Assembly: GCF_964204645.1 (NCBI RefSeq)
Contig: NC_134034.1
Location: 1,674,072 to 1,738,071 of the forward strand
Source of the DNA: Tubulanus polymorphus
Taxonomy: Eukaryota > Animalia > Nemertea
DNA: 64,000 nucleotides
Direction: 5' to 3'
Made by a program: the position numbers and the translations under genes
Shown: one piece after another, positions 30,579-54,700 of the stretch
Layout of the letters: the number at the start of each line of letters is the position of its first letter
Numbering within the stretch: the first letter of the stretch is position 1
The notes under the pieces: generated by a model
The model's input: only the letters and a program-made list of their open reading frames with translations
What the model was told of the DNA's origin: nothing
Databases searched by the model: none

Positions 30579-33223
30579 TAAGACCGCTCTGAGCCTAGAC
30601 CGAATCCGAGTCTGGACTTTGTTACTGGACCTGGGAATGAGCATAGCATGGTCATACTGTGGACCAAAATGAGTCGAGGCCGGTCTGATGTAATAGGTTT
30701 TTAAGTGTAAAAGTCTGTCTGATTTTAATGTAATTTCTTAATAGTAGAACTGCACCGAAATGACCTAAACCCGGTTTTATCTCAACTCCCTAATCGCAGA
30801 ACCGTGACGTCATCTGCAGGATGAACTGGACGAAATTAATTCGAGACAATGAATATTCTAAATCTCAACTATCGAATTAAGCATGTGTCAGTTCATACGA
30901 ATTTAATCAATTTTGCTCGGTGGGAGAGATGTTGGTTGGAGGGGTGCCATGGTATTAGGGGTCAGTTGCTCGTTGTAATATTGTGCAGTTGACAGGTATT
31001 CAAACTGACTCCGGTTCCGCGACCCTCATTTCACACCATGTACCGTATATACTAATGTTTGTACGCACTCTAATCAACTTTTGATTGATAACATCCGCGC
31101 AGATTCTGACAATGATACAGCGGCTGAGATCGGACATCAATCCAGATTCTGACAATGATACGGCCAGCGATGGACAATGATGTAAATATACATATATATA
31201 TCATACATACATCATATTGGATTTAATGATCGGGACTGGTTCTCGTCTCTGTCATAGTTAATGACATAACTCGCCTGCCGGGGCTCACTTCAACATAAAT
31301 CCTGCCCGAAGGTTCTCGATTAGCTGGACTGGTTACCGACAACACGGTAACTGCGGCAAGCGAGAATCCGATAGGTGCGCTTGTAGTAATTCACTCGTTC
31401 TTGCGCGCTTTTATATTTTCGCTACATTTCAATTAGGATCTGGCAATGCTAAGGGATTCCAATTGTGGCAAGTGAGGATCCACCAGGTGTCTCTAGTGGT
31501 TTTTTTTCTCTTTCAATTAAATCATATCAATGAAAACAATTCGAATACCAAACATTGAGGATTGAAAAATAGTGACGTCTTAGATCGTATCTATTTACGG
31601 GAGTTTAGAAAGCGAGACTTCGAATCTGAAAATTGACTATCATCGATTCACGTTAAACCTACTGTTAGTCACGCCATCTGGCGTGGGCTGCCGGTACCTC
31701 ATTCTGTGGGATATTTCCTAATTTCGCAGCTGTTTCCGAGATGAGAGACTGAAGGTTGACAGACGGCTGCACGCAGATGACGGGGTACCGCGACGACGGA
31801 GGGACCGATTTCTAATCGATTTTCGTAGCTATCGTCTGCGCCGTCGAAGAGATAATCTACACGTGACGCATCGGGAAAAACACGAGAACGGTTTGAAACC
31901 GGGTCGATAATATCGATCGGATATTCCGATATACGAATCCGGCGCTTCGCCTGAGAGCGAATTGACGAAAATAGACTTCAACTCAATTTCGATAAATTAT
32001 CAATTTCTGTTTTTAGATTAAGTCGAAAATATTCAGAGAAAAAAATAAGACGAACTGCATTGAATATAACAAGAATATTACTCACCGCCGCCGCTAAGGG
32101 GCGTTCTTTATTTCGATGATGAAATCAGCAAAGAATCAGTAAAATGTATCTTATCAACTCGCATTCTTCGAAACGACGGACAAAAATAGGCTCTTTTAAA
32201 GATTTAATATTTTGATGAACTTCTCATCAACGATAATCATTAAGACAACATACAATTTCTAGGATTTAGTATTTTTTAACAACGAATTTAAGTAAACGTA
32301 ATGATGTTGAGAATATGAAGTTTTTTAATTAATTACTGAATACAAATTGTCGCTTAGAGAATTATCTATTCTACACACATCGAGGGGCCTAGGAATGATA
32401 GAATAGTGATGTTCTGAATTTTTCAAGAATAAATGATTTCTACTATTTTTACTCCATATATAGCTCTACGTCTTGCGAACACTTTACCGCTAGTTCTAAG
32501 CCTTTTGCAAAATCTTTTTTTTTCTGGCTCTCAATCTTCGTGAAATTTGTTTTTTTCGTAAGTTAACTTACGTTTTCACTAGTTCTAAATCATCGTGAAA
32601 TCATTGCTTTTTCGCTGATTCTAAATCTTTGTAAAATTGTTTTTTCGCCAGTTCTAAAATTTCATGAAATTTCATTTTTCGTTAGTTCGAAATCTTTGTA
32701 AAAATGCCTTTCCTTCACTAATTCTAAATCGATCTACAACACTAAAATCTGTAAATCTAAAATTACGTCTAATAAAAGTTCGGTAATATTTTTTTTCGAA
32801 TTTCTAATAAATCACGTGGTCAGTACTAATTCTATACTTGCCCCAAATTAGTTCTTTTTTCTAAATCCAAACGCGGCTTATTCATCGGAATATCCCACAA
32901 GTCACTATTCCGGAAGTCGGGTTGTTCTTACCGCCGGCCGCAGTCCAACGCTAATCACCTATCACGCGGTTCCGGACATCCGTGCGCACCGGAAGTATTT
33001 ATTATTCGTTACCTTCAAAATGTTTTTCTAAATTTTCCGAGTTTTCTTTCCAAACTTTTTTTTTACATTTTCCAAGTTTGTAACATTTCTTCGCGTTACA
33101 AAAACACATGAGATATTGATAGTAATCATTATAACAGTAATAATAATAATCATAATAATAATAATTATGATGAACTGATAGTAATTTCGGTACTCGTCGT
33201 GGCTTTAATTTTCTGCTTTAGAG

Positions 33224-33918
33224 TTAATCGTGCCAGGTCTGATAGCGGGTCGGAGCGCCGTCGAATCCGTCCGCGGTTTGGGCGCCGAATCGCAGCGGGC
33301 GGGCGAAATAGTTCTTCCACTGTTGCATACGCGCGTTACCGCCGGCCCCGAAACTGCCCTTGCCGCCGCCGAAACGTTTCCGCAAAATCGCTTTCTTCCA
33401 TTTTTGAAACTTGCCGTCCGAGTCGGATTCGAACCCGCTATCGCCCGCGCCGAAACTGCGTTTCTTGTTCCAATTTTGGAATTTGGTATCGGATCCGAAC
33501 GCCTCGTCGCCGCCGGCGAAACCGCGTTTCCTCTTCCAACTCTGGAACTTGTCGGCATCGGAGTTTGCGAAAATCTCGCTCAAATCGTCGCCGGCGAACG
33601 CTCGTTTTTTATTCCAATTTTGAAACGGGTGGGCGGCTCCGAAAACCGACCCTTCATCGGCGTCGAGGCCGGCACGTTTTTTCTTCTTCCACGCTTGGAA
33701 CTTGCCGTGACCCCCCGTGAAGCTGTCATCGGCCTTGTCGTTATCGGCGAAATTTCGTTTTTCCAATGTTGTAAGTTAGCGTGGGACGATCCGCCGTGGA
33801 ATTCCTGATCGTCTGCTCCGAAGTTACGCTTCTCGGCCGCAGCGGCAGACGACTCGACCACAACGACCACGATTAAAAACAGTACAACGCTTAAATTCAC
33901 GAATTGCCAACTCACCAT
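33224..33918 (-). CDS. Intronless neuropeptide-type precursor (about 231 aa if the frame is restored) with 8 related (F/L/M/Y)QxW peptides; 1-nt frameshift at 33758-33762
   Basis: ORF 33918-33580 supplies the signal peptide MVSWQFVNLSVVLFLIVVVVVESSA, KR and peptide 1. ORF 33766-33224 supplies seven homologous peptides separated by basic sites (KKR, KRKR, RKR, single K/R). One extra A in TGG-AAAAA-CGA joins them as ..HWKKRNF.. Confidence 0.88.
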
Positions 33919-33919
33919 T

Positions 33920-34285
33920 GTTACGTATTGTTACGTGATGCACGTACGAACTTTTACGTTATATAAATATGTACAAAAACGTAGGTTTTTGACGTTAAAA
34001 GCGTTCAGTCCAGTTGAGTCGCTAGTTACGCTTTGTAGAGCGTTTTTGCTGACGTTATATGCGTTGACGTTTAAACGTAGTTAAACTAGCGTTGTTATAA
34101 TCAAACGACACAGCACGTTGACGTTAGAACGTTAGACGCCGTCGCGGACTCTCTATCTCTACGTGACGTTACTTTACGTCGCGATTATATACCTACGTAT
34201 CTCGTCTGCTCCGCTGCGCTTGATCGTCACGTGATAGGTCAACTTGCCGCAACGACTCGCGTTACGTTGGCGGTTGACGTGTTAG
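33920..34285 (-). promoter_or_regulatory. Putative promoter/5' region of the peptide gene with a dense ACGT (CRE/bZIP/E-box core) cluster
   Basis: 19 ACGT tetramers (6 as TGACGT, 1 as CACGTG) in about 360 bp; TATA-like elements at 33959-33967 and 34184-34191 on the minus strand. Confidence 0.6.
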
Positions 34286-34859
34286 AAACTTTCTCCCGCT
34301 CTTAGACTGGCGTCCGGATAATTATAGACCGGTGTCCAGACATAGACTGGTATCCTCATATAGTCTCCTGACAGAATGATCGGTTATCCTGATGCTTAAA
34401 GACTGATCTCTCACAAATTGAGACCGGAGATAAATAGACGGGTTCCCGACGACTCGTAGACTGGTGTCCATTTGAATGAGAGCAATGTAGATTTCTATAC
34501 AAGCAAAAATTTCCACCACGAGTGAAAAGAAAACATTTAGAATATTTTGGATCCGGCGCCAATTTGGTGATTTTATCACTAGGAATTGTGCGAAGACTGT
34601 TTTCTAAGATTCTACCCTTCCATCCATCCATGTGCTGGGTTTTTTCGCAATTTCTACAAATTGTATTTGGTAACGGGACGCGCTTATTGCTGGTGGTGGT
34701 TTTTTTTCTGTTTCATTGTACGGTATCACTGTGTGTAGTGCGGCCGAGGGTGCAATATATGATTGTTTCACCGATCGATCTACAACAGACGAGTTTAGAA
34801 TACTTATTATATTTTTACATGTTATTTTCAATACACAATTCACTTCCTCTCTCACTTCC

Positions 34860-35600
<741 letters not shown>

Positions 35601-38145
35601 TCAATTGTATATTCCTAGCATCATTCAAGCGCAGTAGTGAAGGATTCCAGTAGATTTCCCAGTTGAGTTCCGATCATAGAACCGTACATGGTTTATGTTG
35701 TTATATATGCGCGGTGAACAGTGTTTTTTTTCGACTGACTTTGATGAGTTAATTGTGAGAAAGACCACGCGTAGGAATTGGCCGCCGCTCCCCGGATATA
35801 CATATCTATTTTGTTAATGAAACAAGTAAAACAACTTGGCGCTTTGAAAAATGACAAAATATATGCTTAACATCATATAAATTACCCAATATTAAGGAAC
35901 AACAAAGTCGTTTTGGATCTGAATATATCGATGATTGAATCGAGTTGACCGGTAACCAGTCTATTAGTTCCACATATTCGGTGAAAAAAACATTCGCAAC
36001 GGACTTATTTTGACGAAGCTTTGCCTAAAACTGTAGAACCGGAAGTCTTTGTTGTGAATGAAATGTGAATGAAAGCCAACTGTTTTATTATGTGATGACA
36101 CGATTCGTTTTTTTCGCAACGCCCTCTCGTGTTATCGACAGGTGTAACTTTCTTTCCTATATCGGACAAAAGCAGATAGGAAAATAGACACGGCTGGTGG
36201 AGTTTGTTTCATATATCCCGGACAACGGGACAACTACTAAAGTCTTCGTTAATAAATCCGTAGGCGAGTCTTACCCGTAGCTTCCCCTTCCAGTCGGAAC
36301 CCGCAACATGTGTGCGTGCATGCATGCGTGATAGAGTGCGTGATAACGCAACCCGATATGATATCAAACCACGTGACGCCGCCGATTCGCGATCAATTTC
36401 AAATTCGGCGTTTAATGAATAACAACAACACGTGATGACGTCATCGATGACTCGGTGTCGCTTTTGAAATTGAACAATAACAAAAAGTTTCTCGAGAGAT
36501 AAGTTAATTCGCCTTCACTCGACTGTGGCAGGCGAGGATTGGGGATCCGACGCCGGAATGCGATTCGGGTGATTGAGGTCAGCTGCACGCTTACCTTGTT
36601 GTACGCGACTCGGGTTCGAATCCCGAATTCGGGACGCATTTTTGAACTCGATACAAGATGGTTTTTTACGGTTATTTCAAACTCTCTTCTCAAAGTCTTC
36701 CCTTATTTTCATCACTTAATCACACAGCACACATTCCTATTACGCTTTTGGTTCTGGGGGTACCTTCTTTCCGACCCCAGATTTTTAGAAATCTTTGCCG
36801 TCATCAACCTATATCGCAGCGAATCGGTTATCAGTTCCTCCGATATCCACTAGGGGGCGATAGTCTCAGTACACCAAACAGCCACGAGGGTAACGCGTTT
36901 ATCAAAACAATCTATACTCAATTAGTACAGTCGATATCCGCTAGGGGGATAGATTAATACATCTGAAGACTCGATCGCTAGTTATCTGAAGAATCGATTA
37001 GTACCGCTGACTGTAGCTAGGGGGCTCTGGTAATTGTTAATAAAGAGAATAAAGATTTTCATAATGAAAGCTACCGGATATCCGGTCTAGCCGGTAATTC
37101 GTGGTGGTGATTGAATAAATTAAGCATTAGAAACGAGGCTGGTCACGTGACTACGGAGCGAGTTCAGATTGGTCTTTGATGAAAGGAAAAAAGCAAGAAA
37201 TGAACAGAAAATTGTCGCAATTCTACAAGAGCTAGGACCAAGAACAAGCTTCCAAACAATTTAAAGATATTTTATTTGCTATCGGTTATTTCATATTTTC
37301 AATTCAAACTTTACTGTTTTTAGATAATGAAATTAAACTTTTACTCTGCATATCTGAAGAGACTTACATGAAGCCTTTTCTCACTGTGGTATCATCACAA
37401 ACAAACAAATGGTTTTGATAAATAAATCCATGAAACCACGCATAATATATAATAATCCTGTTTGTCCGTTATTCATGTTTCTAGCTTAAGGATTTCATGA
37501 AATTCGACTATGTGAAATCGTGTAATCTGTAAAATCAAATATTATATTACATCTTATATTCACTCTTAGGTTTGGAGAAGGGAGAGCGGGCGACGGGGTT
37601 AAAAGGTAAGACGTTGATAAGACTTGTCGGTATGAAAGGTAAGTATATCGCTCTGAGATGAAACGATACGATACACGCGCGCGGTTAGTGTAACCAACGG
37701 CTGAACGCAGCAGACGCGATCAAAGAACACGTGTTTATCTCAGGTAATTACTAAAGGTAAGACCTTTAGGGTGATAAGCGAATTGTGTGACTTATCAGAC
37801 GACGCAGAGACGAGTCGGTCGGCTGTTTTGTGTTTTATCAGTTGCTTACCAGGTGTGTGTTCGTCGCCTGTGTTGATTGAGCTTATCAGCCGGCGAAGCT
37901 GTGGTCAAACACGACCACAAACTTACCGCCATCCTGTAACCTTTGCTGATTGGCTGTTACTCACTGAGCGATTGCATTGTGGGGGCGAAGTGCGTGGTTG
38001 TATCCGGGTTCTCAACCGTGACGTAAAGGATTTTGTATTCGTCCCCACAAAAAAAATGTCAGTGCACGTCATGCAGCTTGGATCCTTCCTACCAATTCAC
38101 TGTTTTTAAAGCGTGAAGTCTTTGAATAATCTTTATGAAAAAGAT

Positions 38146-38217: not shown

Positions 38218-40007
38218 CTGTTGTTGCATTTTCCAATCAGTCTTCCAACATTTTGCAATCAGACTTTAAACAAACTTTAACTCAGTATTTGACACCAACT
38301 CAGGGTAGAATTTTACCAGTCTCAACTTTGCCGCAGTTAAGAGACATAATGTATTTCCCGAATAGAAAACGGCCAATACAATGAAATGCGCAAAATTTTC
38401 AAAATCCAAAAATTGTGCTATGTCTTTATCTAGGTCAACGAATGCTAATGACGTCATACCAAAGCGAGCAAAGAGCTTTTCTGTAAAGATATTTCTTCTG
38501 TTTGGAAAAATAGAAACAAAACTCGGAGGCAAAGAAAGACTGCAGATAATAAAGACGATGTTTTCGATTGGAACGCGAGCAGGTGAACTGTTACATTCGT
38601 CGTTTCAGTTCTTTGATTAGCATTTTAGCAAGAGTATATTTTCCTGTTCGTTCGGCGGGGCATAAAATGCGAACTAACAAAACGGTTCGACGAGCAGGAT
38701 TAGTGACGCGCCGCTGGAGAATGGCAGCTCAGACTGACGCAATTCAAACTCGATTACCAGTGCTGGAATTCGCTGAATTTTATTTAAGAATTGGCCAGCG
38801 AACGATCGAAATTCTCTTTGCTATGTTTTTTTCAAATTTCAAATATCTCGACCGTTACCAGATGAACCATTCTAGCAGCAGACGGTAAGCTACCGAAACA
38901 CTCGAAGTGAAGACTTTTACTATCGTTGTAAACAACTAAGCGAAGAAATGAAATAAATTTCAGAAATCTCCGCTAGTTCCAAATGCTAATGGCGTTCGGC
39001 GATTAATCAACGCACGTACAGAACTCTCTCAGTGCACGCTGATTAAGTAGAAGTTAATTGGTTTTTATTATTGAAATTTACGGATATTTCTCGGATGCAA
39101 GAGACGGCATCTCACAGTCGGCTCCGGCGACGACGATGTCGAAATTACGAACAATTTTTCACGCGACAAAATTTAACATCGTAAAATAAACGCGATCACT
39201 TCCGGTTCGTCTGTCATCGCTTAAAACGGTTTTAATTGTTGTACCTCAATGATGTTGTTACCAATAGCGACTAGAATTATGCAGACGTGGATTGAATATA
39301 TAACCTAAACTTAACAACGATTTTTCCTATCTAAAGCCCAATGGTCGGATTTAAGATTATAAATAATCAGTATTTAGATAGATTTCTTCGCAGTTAGATC
39401 TGTAAAGTCAGTGCACAGCGTTTTGTCACTTTTCCAGATATTCTACCGCACAAAAATTTGATAATCAGTTCAAAACTTCGATCGATAATGATCTAATCCA
39501 AGAATCAGTATGAGGAAAAAACTATGACTTAGTGTTCGTCACGCCGTCTGGTGGGATTGCGGTAACCAATCATTCGAGCTTTTTGGTGAAGTTATTTGCG
39601 CCAGTGTACACGGCACGTGATGTTGTTATCAGCTCTACGAAATTCCAACGATTAAAATTCCAATCCCTGATCTCTGTAGTTTCAAACGGAATTCCAGTCG
39701 GAATGCTCGGAATTCACGACTCGGACGAGACACTCAACGATGAAATATTTCAAGATGTTTACGATATTTCAACGCTTAATCATCTTGCTGGTCGATGCGA
39801 CGCGATTGGTCTCTATTAATTAACCAAGATTAAACCGATCTTTACGATGTTTATGGCATATCGCATACCTGCCGCAGATTGTGAGGTTGGTTCATCATCG
39901 AGAAGGATCAGTGCTGCTGCTAGAATTGGGTTCACTAAAAACCCAATGAGTTTGATACTTTTGTACCTGGTAATCTTTGTGTTCTAAGCTTTTCACTCGT
40001 TACTACA

Positions 40008-40530
40008 GGAGAGAGGAGAGAGAGGGAGAGGGGAAAGAGAGAGAGGGAGAGGGGAAAGAGAGAGAGGGGAGAGAGAGGGAGAGGGGAGAGGCGAGAGAGA
40101 GGGAGAGGGGAAAGAGAGAGAGGGGAGAGAGAGGGAGAGGGGAGAGGGAGGGATGGAGAGAGAAGAGATTGAGAGTCAGGCTGGGCGAGAGCGAGTGGGA
40201 TGCAGAGAGGGAGGAGAGTGGTGAGATGGGAGAGGGGAAAGATAGAGAGGGGAAGAGAGAGAGGGAGAGGGGAAAGATAGAGAGGGGAAGAGAGAGAGGG
40301 AGAGGGGAGAGGGGAAAGAGAGAGAGAGGGAGAGGGGAGAGGGATGGATGGAGGGAGGGAGAGAGGAGATTGTGAGTCGGGCTGGGAGAGAGCGAGTGAG
40401 ATGCAGAGAGGTTGGAGAGTGGTGAGATGGGAGAGAGGCATCGAGAGAGGCAGAGAAGGTGACAGGACGAGAGAGGGAGAATCGGGAGAGGCATATAGCA
40501 GAAGGTGGAAGATCGAGAGACGGGAGTGAG
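40008..40530. repeat. GA-rich low-complexity tract with an internal duplication
   Basis: Polypurine run; the GAGATTG..GAGTC.GGCTGGG.GAGAGCGAGTG.GATGCAGAGAGG block occurs twice. Confidence 0.85.
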
Positions 40531-41327
40531 GGGGTGATTAGTGATATTTTATTCATTAAGCGTCACATCTTTTCATCTCTGTCCTAATTAGAAGACTCAC
40601 AGCAGATAAACTAGCAATTCGCAAAGATCGTCTGATTAATCGAAACTACGTAGTCGCAGACGATTTGTATCATTATATAGAGAGAGACGGAAATACGTCA
40701 TACAGTCAAACACCACCAGCATCTTGAAGAGAGAGAGTGAGAGATGTATGGCTGGCTAGCCGACTGGCTAGGTAGAGATGATGACTTTGACTACCTTTTT
40801 CTGCATTGGGAACATGGGTCCTCGTTATATATTCAAAGGTAATTCATTTCTCCAGGGTGCTGGCAACATTTCAAAGGTTGCGGTCGAGATTAACTATTTA
40901 ATAGGGTAAGTCTTGGAAAAAACAAGATCAGCGCTATAGTGACAAGCGGTTTCGAGTCCTGCTGGTTACTGATAGTGTGCTGGTATAACACTTCGAAGGC
41001 CGCGCTCCCGTCGTGCAGAGGTATGAACACGATCCAATCGGGATAGTCTCGGGAAACCAACATCCGAACGAAATGAAATTAAATCAAGCAAGAAACATTC
41101 ATGGTGCCCCACCCTTGTCTAAAGTAAACTTTTTTCAGACAGTACGCGCAATGCCATGACTGTATTTCAATTATCTCTATTCGGATGAAATATTATCACT
41201 ATTTCTCAAAACTTCTTGTTATCATTTTTACCTTTTACGATATGATTTTCGTAATTTTATACGTACGTAAAACGGAAGAGTCTCTCCGCTTTTAGATATC
41301 ATTACGTGACAATCGAGTTTAGAAAGT

Positions 41328-41803
<476 letters not shown>

Positions 41804-42504
41804 GATGAGTCATGGAAAAACACGGGTAACGTGAACAAAGTACTTACGTACTATCGCAGTGGAAAGGAGAGAGGAGAAAAAGATGCGTGAGGAAGTGAGG
41901 ATTGGAAGGGAGTAGAGAATGGGATTTACATCGAGATGGAAGAGAGGGAGGGGAAAGAGAGATGAGGGTTATTGAACAAGAGACCAGTGAAATGATATAG
42001 CATGCGTGGAAGCTTGAATGGACCTTAGAAGTCAGGAGAAGACCAGCGAAAGATAGAGGATAGAATGATAGACAAAGTAGGAGGAGGACAGAAGAGGAGT
42101 GGGCGATTGCAAGGTCATGACCTGATATATACTCTATGTTGCCAAATACAGACAGAGGCGGTTACTTCAGTTCATTGATATACATATATTATATGACATT
42201 ATGTTACACTGAACGCATGATGTATAGTGTTCAATCAATTTCACTTAATGGTCAGAAATGGACGGTTTCTCTTGTTTCAATCGAAATCTCATCTGTCCCT
42301 TCTCACTCCTGGTGGAACGAGTCTCAGGTGTGCGCGACACACACGACTAGAACTACTGAACGGTTATCATTATAACGGAGATCGTAAATATCAAATCTGA
42401 CTCTTCGTCAAACACTTCATAATGTCGCTTTCAATATCAATGCGCAGTTTGATCTACACCCAGTCGATTTCGACACGAACTTACTCCCCCTAGAAAGTGC
42501 TCTT

Positions 42505-51740: not shown

Positions 51741-54700
51741 CTAATAAATATCCGTCTGTTCCTCCCTGCGTCCTCTCTGATTAATCACCACCTTCGAATG
51801 AGTAACGATATTTTTGCCGTTCGGCCCGGTTGCTGGCCCGGTCGACGCCGGGTTCGCAGGCGTCCCGTACGAGCGAGATTTACCCGACTCTAAACTACCC
51901 GTACTTTCACTGTCGCTCGACGATGTTTTCTCTTTCGTATCCGTGGTGATGATCGTTGACGCGGCGCGTGCTCTGATCTCCGGGCTACGCACGACCTGAC
52001 GTAAGTTGATGTTCTGCTCTTGTAAATCCGGTCGGTTCAAGTTCGAGTAAACGCCGGCCATTAGATCTTTCTCGAACCGCGACATCCCTCCGCCTCGCGG
52101 CGACCTCTGCTGACCGGGCGGCACCGGCAACGCTTCTGATATACCTCCTCGACCTCGAGGAGGTTGCTGCGACGCTGGAGGCGGCGGCAATACCTCAGAC
52201 ATACCTCCCTGACCTCTGGGAGGCTGTTGCGAGGTCGGTGGAGATGGCAACGCTTCTGTCAAGCCTCCACGACCTCTGGGAGGTTGCTGAGAGGTTGGTG
52301 GAGGCGGCAATGCCTCAGACATACCTCCACGACCTCTGGGTGGTTGCTGAGAGGTAGGCGGAGGTGGTAGGGCCTCAGACATACCTCCGCGACCTCTCGG
52401 AGGCTGTTGCGAGGTCGGTAAAGGCGGAAGGGCCTCAGACATACCACCGCGACCTCTGGGAGGTTGCTGGGAGGTCGGTGAATGCGATTGTAAATTCTCC
52501 GATTGCGAGCAGCGAATATTTTCGATGTTCTCGTAATCGCCGTCAGACGTGACAGCGAAACCCTGCCCGGGAATCACCGAAAAACACCTGCTACTGCGCC
52601 GTGGCGGGGGTGGAGGCGGCGTCTTCTTCTGAGGTGGCGTCTGCTCGCCGTGTTTACTCATATCGACACCAGGTGGCAGTTGAGGCAGCGGTTTGTTATA
52701 ACCGGGTATAGTCTCGGCCGGTACCGGCGGGAAGCTGCGTAATTTCGGATGCGGGTGCGGTAGTTCGGTCATATGAACCCACGGATCGAAACTAACGCTC
52801 TTTCCGCCCGATTGTTGCACGCCCGCGGCGACCGTAATGACCTTCGCCGCCGGGTTTTCCTCGTGGAACGATTGCGACATGGTGGCGCCGCCGGTTGTCG
52901 TCGGCGCGATCGTCTGCCCGCCGTGGTACGAATTCGACATCAAACCGGGCATCGCGTAGTGCGCCGATAACCCGCTAGACGGCGCCGTTGCCACGTTCAC
53001 GGACGGCTCCGCCTCTTTGCGTAGATCGTCGTGGAACGAAGCCGACGCGAGGACCGCGTTGCGTGGAATCGAATTATTCGTCGTTTCGGCCATCGATAGA
53101 GGGCGCTGTCTGAGCGTGTACGGCGAGGCTGGCTCCGACTTGGAACGTTCGAGGAGAATCTGCGATTTAAGCAGCAGCGGAGACGCGTACAACGACTCGG
53201 AGCCACCCGTCGTTTTAACCAACGAGCGTTGAACGTTCGCGTAAATCGATTCCGCTCGTGTCGGATACAGATTCGTTTGAGCGTATAACGGATCGGTGGC
53301 GCCACCTGCCGGCGACGATATCGACCGACCGTAATAACCGTCGAAACCGGAGGACGCGGGCGGCGGCGAGAACGACGACATGACGACCGCCGGCGGATTG
53401 CGTAACGGCGACGTCGACGACGGAACGGTGATGTATTCGACGGGCGCCGGTTGAATCGTCAAGGTCGTCATCGATTCGCGTTGAGGGAAATCGGAATCGC
53501 GTACCGGTATTTCGTTTATACCGATCGGCGTCTGCTGCAGCTGCGCGGTCGTCGCGGCGACGGAATGAGCAGACGCTTTTTTAACGATCATCGCAGACGA
53601 ATTCGAATTATTCTCGACGATGAATTTCACGTCTGCTTTGACGTCTTTACTGTCCTTCCTAGGGGGCGTTTTCTGTCCTTTTTTCTCCGTCTGCTGCTGC
53701 TGCTGAACGTCTGCCGTTTTCGATGATTCCGCCGCCGCCGCTGCAGATGTCTTATCCGACTTCTTCGACTTCCCGGCCAAAAATCCGAACCGCGACGTCG
53801 TGCGCTCTTTGTTCTTCTCTTTCTCCCGTTTCTCTTTTTCTTTCTCTTGTCTCGCGCGTTCTTTCTCTCTCTCTTTCATTTTCTCGCGCTCCCGTAGAAT
53901 TCGTTCTTTCTCTTTTTGCTGACGCATTTTCTCCAGTTCTTTTTCTTTCAATTTCGCGCCTTTTTCTTTCGCCGCTTTTTCCTTCGCGCCGGATTTACCG
54001 TCCGTCGACGACGAGCCGTCCGACTTTTTTCCCGACGATCCGGTCGGCGTTCGCGCCGAACTACTACCGCTGCTACTAGCACCGCCGGGACTACGCGACG
54101 CCGTACCGTTACTCGAAGTCGGCGTGCGCCCGCCACCGCCGTTCGTCGTCGGACTCTGCCCGCTAGGTGGCGTTGTCGTCGTCGATAATTTTTCGCCGGG
54201 TTTCGTTTCGCGCAGGTTTTTGCTGGCGATCTCAAGCGATTTCTCGAATTTTAACGCTTCTTGAGAACACTGGATTTTTTTCATGCGTTCACGAGACGAT
54301 TCAGCCGCCTGCGGAGAGAGAATTGAAAGATAATATTCGGAAGAACAATATTCTACAAGTAGAGCAGTTTAATTAACTTTAACCTGTATGGGCTGGTTTC
54401 AAAGGTCACTTTTAACTTGAAAGTGTATGGGATAGATTTATAGACCAGTTCTAATATGAACCCTGCAGGGGCTGGTTTTATAGACCAGTTTTAACTTGAA
54501 GCCTGCAGGGACTGGTTTTATAGACCAGTTCTAATATGAACCCTGCAGGGGCTGGTTTTATAGACCAGTTCTAATGTGAACCCTGCAGGGGCTGGTTTTA
54601 TAGACCAGTTTTAACTTGAAGCCTGCAGGGGCTGGTTTTATAGACCAGTTCTAATGTGAACCCTGCAGGGACTGGTTTTATAGACCAGTTTTAACTTGAA

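Follow-up and report, generated by a model that had tools for sequence, protein, structure and literature searches.

A candidate orphan prohormone-type gene encoding eight Q-x-W peptides in the nemertean Tubulanus polymorphus

The minus strand of the window (the whole 64,000-nt stretch of Tubulanus polymorphus DNA analysed) carries at 33,224–33,918 a genuine-looking orphan gene of prohormone type, a candidate known from genomic sequence, whose common allele is intact. In our main reading, which we hold with a probability of roughly 0.55, this is a single-copy gene whose coding exon is uninterrupted and specifies a secretory precursor of prohormone type, and the peptides released from it are likely neuropeptides or hormones. 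The architecture of the precursor is conventional; the peptide sequence is its only new element.

In the reference, the coding sequence is divided between two minus-strand open reading frames, 33,580–33,918 (112 aa, ATG start) and 33,224–33,766 (180 aa). Both are present exactly as described in an earlier sequence-only reading, which had taken them to conceal one precursor, and joined they encode a signal-type N-terminus, then AAAE-KR, then eight related peptides with a Q-x-W motif (hence QxW gene and QxW precursor). An in-frame TAA 15 nt 5′ of the ATG makes 33,918 the earliest possible start; the bases around this ATG include A at −3 and G at +4. The coding part is uninterrupted, without an intron. 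The ORF is single copy in the 268-Mb assembly and the 402 nt upstream are likewise unique there; single copy number together with a unique upstream region of 400 nt indicates that this is not a transposon. The consensus 5′ splice donor GTGAGT adjoins the start codon (33,910–33,918), although the frame still continues into a good signal peptide, and antisense frames across the ORF are also open (173 and 192 aa). The features of the gene are:

33,224–33,918, minus strand: coding region, ATG (33,916–33,918) to stop codon (33,224–33,226), 231 aa with the extra G
33,844–33,918, minus strand: predicted signal peptide, approximately residues 1–25 (from hydrophobicity; putative cleavage site)
33,826–33,843, minus strand: Ala-rich spacer ending E-K-R, the first dibasic site
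33,763–33,825, minus strand: QxW peptide 1, 21 residues to Q-H-W; the intact allele adds Glu before KR
33,762–33,764, minus strand: 1-nt deficit of the reference, GG in the window versus GGG in contigs X1, X2 and X5
33,689–33,754, minus strand: QxW peptide 2, then KKKKR
33,611–33,673, minus strand: QxW peptide 3, ending WN, then KKR
33,536–33,601, minus strand: QxW peptide 4, then KRKR, the site of an R>K polymorphism
33,467–33,523, minus strand: QxW peptide 5, ending WN, then KKR
33,398–33,457, minus strand: QxW peptide 6, then KK, an AIL spacer and RKR
33,317–33,373, minus strand: QxW peptide 7, Gly-rich, with a K>E polymorphism, then a monobasic K and an NYFARPL-R spacer
33,227–33,289, minus strand: QxW peptide 8, ending WHD, with the stop codon adjoining
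32,998–33,003, minus strand: AATAAA, putative polyadenylation-signal-like hexamer about 220 nt past the stop codon

The predicted signal peptide, judged from hydrophobicity, has a 16-residue Val/Leu/Ile/Phe core followed by E-S-S-A-A, with Kyte-Doolittle 11-residue means of up to 4.0 at residues 6–21 and an n-region without positive charge. Translation and a MAFFT alignment of the eight units (A1) reproduced the arrangement proposed from the letters, i.e. this N-terminus, AAAE-KR and eight homologous peptides. The units, 19–22 residues long, share an x-F-(G/A) start and a (K/R)-(F/L/M/Y)-Q-x-W end, with the consensus x-F-G-G-x-D-x-x-F-...-K-F-Q-x-W in which Q and W are invariant. Of nine Trp among the 231 residues one is in the signal peptide and the other eight all fall within Q-x-W. 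The claimed lack of Cys and of a Gly amidation donor held across all 231 residues, no Gly preceding any basic site.

Eight repeated units bounded by KR, KKR, KRKR, KKKKR or RKR sites constitute a multi-copy precursor, and the suggested layout of a convertase-processed protein was borne out: every basic cluster lies at a repeat boundary, at most two residues past the invariant Trp and with the next x-F directly after, and most clusters end in KR. Two details of the original description stand in part. Most boundaries are basic sites as stated, but those between peptides 6 and 7 and between 7 and 8 hold spacers (AIL; NYFARPL) and rely on KK, RKR and monobasic sites; Trp was given as a free C-terminus, but four peptides end in WN, WN, WE and WHD. 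AlphaFold gave no fold for the precursor (pLDDT 54, pTM 0.18), which is what one expects of a precursor destined for cleavage.

On this layout, the N-terminal signal peptide would route the precursor into the secretory pathway, where subtilisin-type prohormone convertases would cleave after KR, KKR, KRKR, KKKKR and RKR, and possibly also at two sites close to the last two copies, a monobasic K and an R-x-x-x-R, before a carboxypeptidase E-type enzyme removes the basic residues. The predicted products are about eight acidic, Gly/Ala/Asp/Phe-rich, non-amidated and Cys-free peptides of 19–22 residues, most likely neuropeptides or hormones that would act on a putative receptor. The convertase-2 chaperone 7B2 is given for Tubulanus by Thiel et al. 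2021 (PMC8557429), indicating that the processing machinery is present.

The break between the two frames corresponds to one G lacking from a GGG run (minus strand, 33,763–33,764). When public sequencing runs labelled as the same species were aligned to 32,300–34,500, an extra C (plus strand) was found after 33,762 in contigs X1 and X2 (two samples of study P1) and X5 (study P2, 2014), and the extra base is also present in four of six raw Illumina reads of X6 (study P3). With it, the gene strand reads CAT TGG GAA AAA CGA AAT (H-W-E-K-R-N-F), both ORFs fuse into 231 codons, peptide 1 ends ...QHWE and the first inter-peptide junction becomes W-E-K-R. The reading-frame break is thus either an assembly error or a minority allele present in the reference haplotype. 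The frameshift named in the sequence-only reading does not belong to the gene as such, as shown by the extra base in the contigs of three samples and in 4/6 X6 reads. The missing base is G and not A, and the junction is E-KR and not KKR. Programmed −1/+1 recoding is ruled out, since the extra base exists in the DNA of other samples, and no joints marking an intron at the break or elsewhere in 32,300–34,500 were seen in the aligned runs, which are DNA runs in which splicing is invisible. Because the gene is unbroken in its common allele, this apparent frameshift should not be read as a sign of pseudogenisation. A segregating null allele is possible in view of the two X6 reads that lack the insertion, and a truncating frameshift, if real, would imply that a null allele is tolerated.

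Several features point to a constrained coding sequence. In their DNA the eight copies have drifted too far apart to be detected by Tandem Repeats Finder, yet they keep K/R, F, Q and W through varied synonymous codons (AAG/AAA, CGT/CGC, TTC/TTT, CAA/CAG), which indicates old duplications and purifying selection on the peptide. Among seven SNPs found in the coding sequence of the sampled haplotypes, five are synonymous, one is a K>E change and one is R>K in the KRKR site; synonymous changes would make up five or more of the seven with a probability of 0.005 without weighting and 0.04 when only transitions are counted, values from which the contribution of an antisense frame sharing the wobble positions is not separable. 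G+C content is 0.555 in the coding sequence compared with 0.31 and 0.43 in the flanks, and by codon position it is 0.55/0.47/0.69, a match to the 0.46/0.45/0.65 of the pedal-peptide-1 (PP1) exon of the same genome.

Searches of sequence collections returned no relative. The 112-aa and 180-aa pieces were used as separate queries for the protein libraries: neither matched in Pfam, no relative was found by a word-indexed search of 5.8 billion proteins, and phmmer against 1.84 billion representative proteins gave two matches, both spurious. One (P0001, 298 aa) is evidently a translated CRISPR-like array, in which a 12-residue unit ending P-F-Q-T-W-K alternates with variable spacers and the same repeat in another frame; entries of this type are a source of false matches for short motifs of Q-x-W type. 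The other (P0002) is a wall-repeat protein from a bacterium. From the genome itself, a 20-position HMM built on the repeats recovered only the eight repeats and no paralogue. In the ESM Atlas, where scores under 0.9 count as leads only, the nearest proteins of assigned family include multi-copy precursors of arthropod tachykinin and allatostatin (0.76–0.79); the first-ranked match, at 0.81, is a fragment of a viral nucleoprotein unrelated to the gene. About 1,300 proneuropeptides from 13 nemerteans including Tubulanus, brachiopods and phoronids are covered by the supplement of Thiel et al. 2021 (PMC8557429); F-Q-x-W or Q-x-W-basic motifs are absent from its precursor lists (about 1,300 entries), and a full-text literature search for QxW peptide motifs found nothing relevant. 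With no homologue in Pfam, the protein libraries or the published lists, and with the motifs of the named families lacking from the repeats, the proposal that the precursor fits no named family was upheld.

The Tubulanus transcriptome of Thiel et al. probably does not derive from the same population or species as the present genome, to judge from sequence comparison: the allatotropin exon here (L010) is collinear with, and by eye about 80% identical to, their T. polymorphus precursor (PMC8557429), which marks the genome as that of a Tubulanus-like palaeonemertean. The G-I-S-D repeat ‘achatin’ fragment listed there for T. polymorphus was not found in this genome (G000); its origin may be a different species or population, or translation in a wrong frame. 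Mitochondrial COX1 had no match in the 77-contig assembly.

The closest named family is pedal peptide/orcokinin. The genome has its own PP1 exon (L012:1444–2067; contig C7, around 2,157,200) encoding eleven G/P-F-D-S-I-G-H-G-x-F-S-x-F-x copies, preceded in the same frame by an FCAP/orcokinin-B-like L-D-T-L-G-G peptide, and Lineus PP1 in Thiel et al. 2021 (PMC8557429) agrees with this composite design. Pedal peptide/orcokinin and QxW precursors both have a signal peptide (a predicted one in QxW) and many tandem non-amidated, Cys-free peptides separated by KR or KKR. PP1 and QxW peptides also share Phe at position 2, an acidic Gly-rich middle and a C-terminal aromatic-x-x-aromatic (F-S-x-F in PP1, F-Q-x-W here), and one QxW copy contains G-H-G-x-F as in PP1. 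Unlike pedal peptide, the QxW units have no F-D-S-I-G core, are 5–8 residues longer and end in Trp with Gln invariant; the family motif (x-F-D-x-I/L-G with a G-F or F-x-F end) is absent from A1.

Comparisons of whole sequences gave mixed results. Blastp of the QxW precursor against the PP1 precursor of the same genome gave an E value of 0.008, in register across two repeats (G-H-G-x-F-x-x-aromatic, basic site, x-F), and in a peptide-level shuffle test with this PP1 as the sole comparison the likeness was equalled by 7 of 1,000 composition-matched shuffles. The precursor-level test, run on concatenated translations of both ORF pieces, was no better than shuffles (654/2,000 with basic sites kept), hhalign of the two repeat alignments gave a probability of 0.7%, and the 20-column HMM of QxW repeats did not retrieve the PP1 gene in the genome. 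The earlier claim of a likeness to pedal peptide/orcokinin is thus kept as regards Phe2, the acidic/Gly core and the peptide-level shuffles (7/1,000), but not by the core motif, hhalign or the precursor-level test. We regard the resemblance, seen in sequence comparison, as weak and suggestive only; the QxW family may have branched off from this type, with much divergence and a C-terminal extension.

Likenesses to other families are more limited in extent. FCAP peptides are, like QxW peptides, multi-copy and non-amidated with an aromatic C-terminal residue (Trp in Aplysia FCAP), and one QxW copy begins G-L-D in FCAP-like fashion. The scallop motif is x-L-D-x-L-G-G-x-aromatic-(I/L/V)-H-G-aromatic (PMC5996578), and membership was rejected, since L-D-x-L-G-G...H-G-aromatic is missing from 8/8 QxW copies; the FCAP-like L-D-T-L-G-G peptide of this genome belongs to the PP1 gene and not to the QxW gene. 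Of the FCAP likeness first proposed, a Trp in the C-terminal region and the lack of amidation remain, but the motif does not. The F-x-x-W core of leucokinin was also invoked: Phe and Trp are indeed three residues apart near the C-terminus, but no copy has the Gly after Trp that F-x-x-W-G-amide demands, and QxW peptides, which lack an amide-donor Gly, have about three times the length of leucokinin. For Tubulanus, Thiel et al. 2021 (PMC8557429) give a separate leucokinin precursor. Achatin (a G-(F/Y)-(G/A)-(D/E) tetrapeptide between dibasic sites) was rejected: QxW peptides have 19–22 residues, only the first 3–4 of which resemble it, and nemertean achatin precursors in the same supplement (PMC8557429) look unlike the QxW precursor. 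The nemertean-restricted precursors that Thiel et al. 2021 (PMC8557429) recognised from mass spectrometry (WWS, DMF, AGEamide, GGRWamide and GxGH) are comparable in being orphan, lineage-restricted secretory precursors recognised by architecture or peptidomics. They differ in that the QxW repeats have no sequence similarity to the copies in the supplement, and QxW is found in one species so far.

Three other explanations of the locus were weighed against the neuropeptide or hormone reading. Of these the likeliest, to which we give a minor share, is a gland-cell product of epidermis, proboscis or tube-secreting tissue, made by the same convertase processing and serving as pheromones, mucus or tube components, or deterrents. 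Nothing in the sequence separates neurons from gland cells, long (19–22 aa), acidic, non-amidated peptides are less typical of neuropeptides, and the gene was missed by a neuropeptide-directed transcriptome screen of a congener; nemertean mucus, moreover, contains many secreted peptides. Known nemertean secreted toxins, however, are Cys-rich whereas this precursor has no Cys, and non-amidated acidic multi-copy neuropeptides are normal in pedal peptide, orcokinin and FCAP. That the basic clusters have a structural role and do not serve for cleavage, in a secreted, unprocessed low-complexity matrix or tube protein, is improbable. The Gly-, Ala-, Asp- and Phe-rich composition and predicted disorder would suit such a protein, and Tubulanus inhabits secreted tubes, but the clusters, all at repeat boundaries and mostly ending in KR, have the pattern of convertase sites.

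A decaying or never-functional ORF, either a pseudogene or a lineage-specific frame without expression or translation, appears slightly less probable than the gland-cell product. It would account for the frameshift in the reference, for the lack of a homologue and hence of cross-species conservation in the searched protein libraries, and for the open antisense frames of 173 and 192 aa. Transcript searches also bear on it: among public runs labelled as the same species, no run recorded as RNA contains the gene, and a probable RNA run of 2015 has almost none of its sequence words. The only possible transcript is a 155-nt contig (33,705–33,858, depth 3.2) from a small 2014 run without a recorded library type, the contig statistics of which are transcriptome-like. 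Against decay, four independently sampled haplotypes are intact, the eight diverged repeats retain their motif and cleavage sites through synonymous codon changes, synonymous SNPs are in excess (5/7), the GC3 is gene-like, and the start context is good (A at −3, G at +4), with AATAAA downstream.

Upstream of the ATG is a candidate regulatory region with an unusual composition:

33,926–34,283, minus strand: candidate promoter (putative function), with ACGT cores and half-CRE-like sites
33,959–33,965, minus strand: TATA-like TATATAA, 41–47 nt before the ATG

Nineteen ACGT cores lie within 400 nt upstream of the ATG, compared with a maximum of seven elsewhere in the 64-kb window, and CpG observed/expected in this region is about 2.2. 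Six TGACGT half-CRE-like sites share one orientation, four of them reading TGACGTTA; elsewhere in the genome a triple TGACGTTA cluster is confined to contig C8, where two satellite-like loci carry it. The upstream ACGT cluster does not represent a repeat family, as the 402 nt are unique in the genome, nor is it a signature shared by neuropeptide genes, being absent from the allatotropin and PP1 loci. From its sequence it may be a bZIP-type regulatory module. A more specific version of the neuropeptide reading, which we consider tentative and on balance doubtful, is that of an undescribed palaeonemertean-restricted neuropeptide family with its own receptor, derived from a pedal-peptide/orcokinin-type gene by C-terminal extension to (K/R)-F-Q-x-W and placed under an unusual, genome-unique ACGT-core (bZIP/CRE-like) promoter.

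If expressed and processed, the QxW peptides would add one more lineage-restricted family to the nemertean signalling repertoire, and would illustrate that genome reading recovers precursors missed by homology- or motif-driven transcriptome screens. The gene could also show how a pedal-peptide/orcokinin-like gene diverges past recognition; the pedal-peptide family is reportedly still without a receptor in the spiralian survey of Thiel et al. General significance is modest, given the textbook architecture.

Sequence around the gene is variable and locally repetitive. The 3′ UTR region is polymorphic, with 27 extra letters at 33,047/33,048 in the X1 contig, and an (ATA)n/15-nt microsatellite (33,119–33,165) breaks the X2 contigs. 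Elsewhere in the window, an 847-aa open frame (51,741–54,284, minus strand) lies in a GC-rich (0.57) island and encodes a Lys/Glu-rich coiled-coil-like stretch plus six tandem 20-residue Pro/Gly/Arg-rich repeats of the type T-S-Q-Q-P-P-R-G-R-G-G-M-S-E-A-L-P-P-P-P; Pfam gave no match for this frame, probably one large exon from a gene for a disordered protein. At 34,520–35,620 and 40,000–42,000, long (CT)n/(GA)n-type microsatellites generate spurious ‘SLSLSL’ ORFs of 160–320 aa and show extreme GC/AT skew (−0.40 and +0.60).
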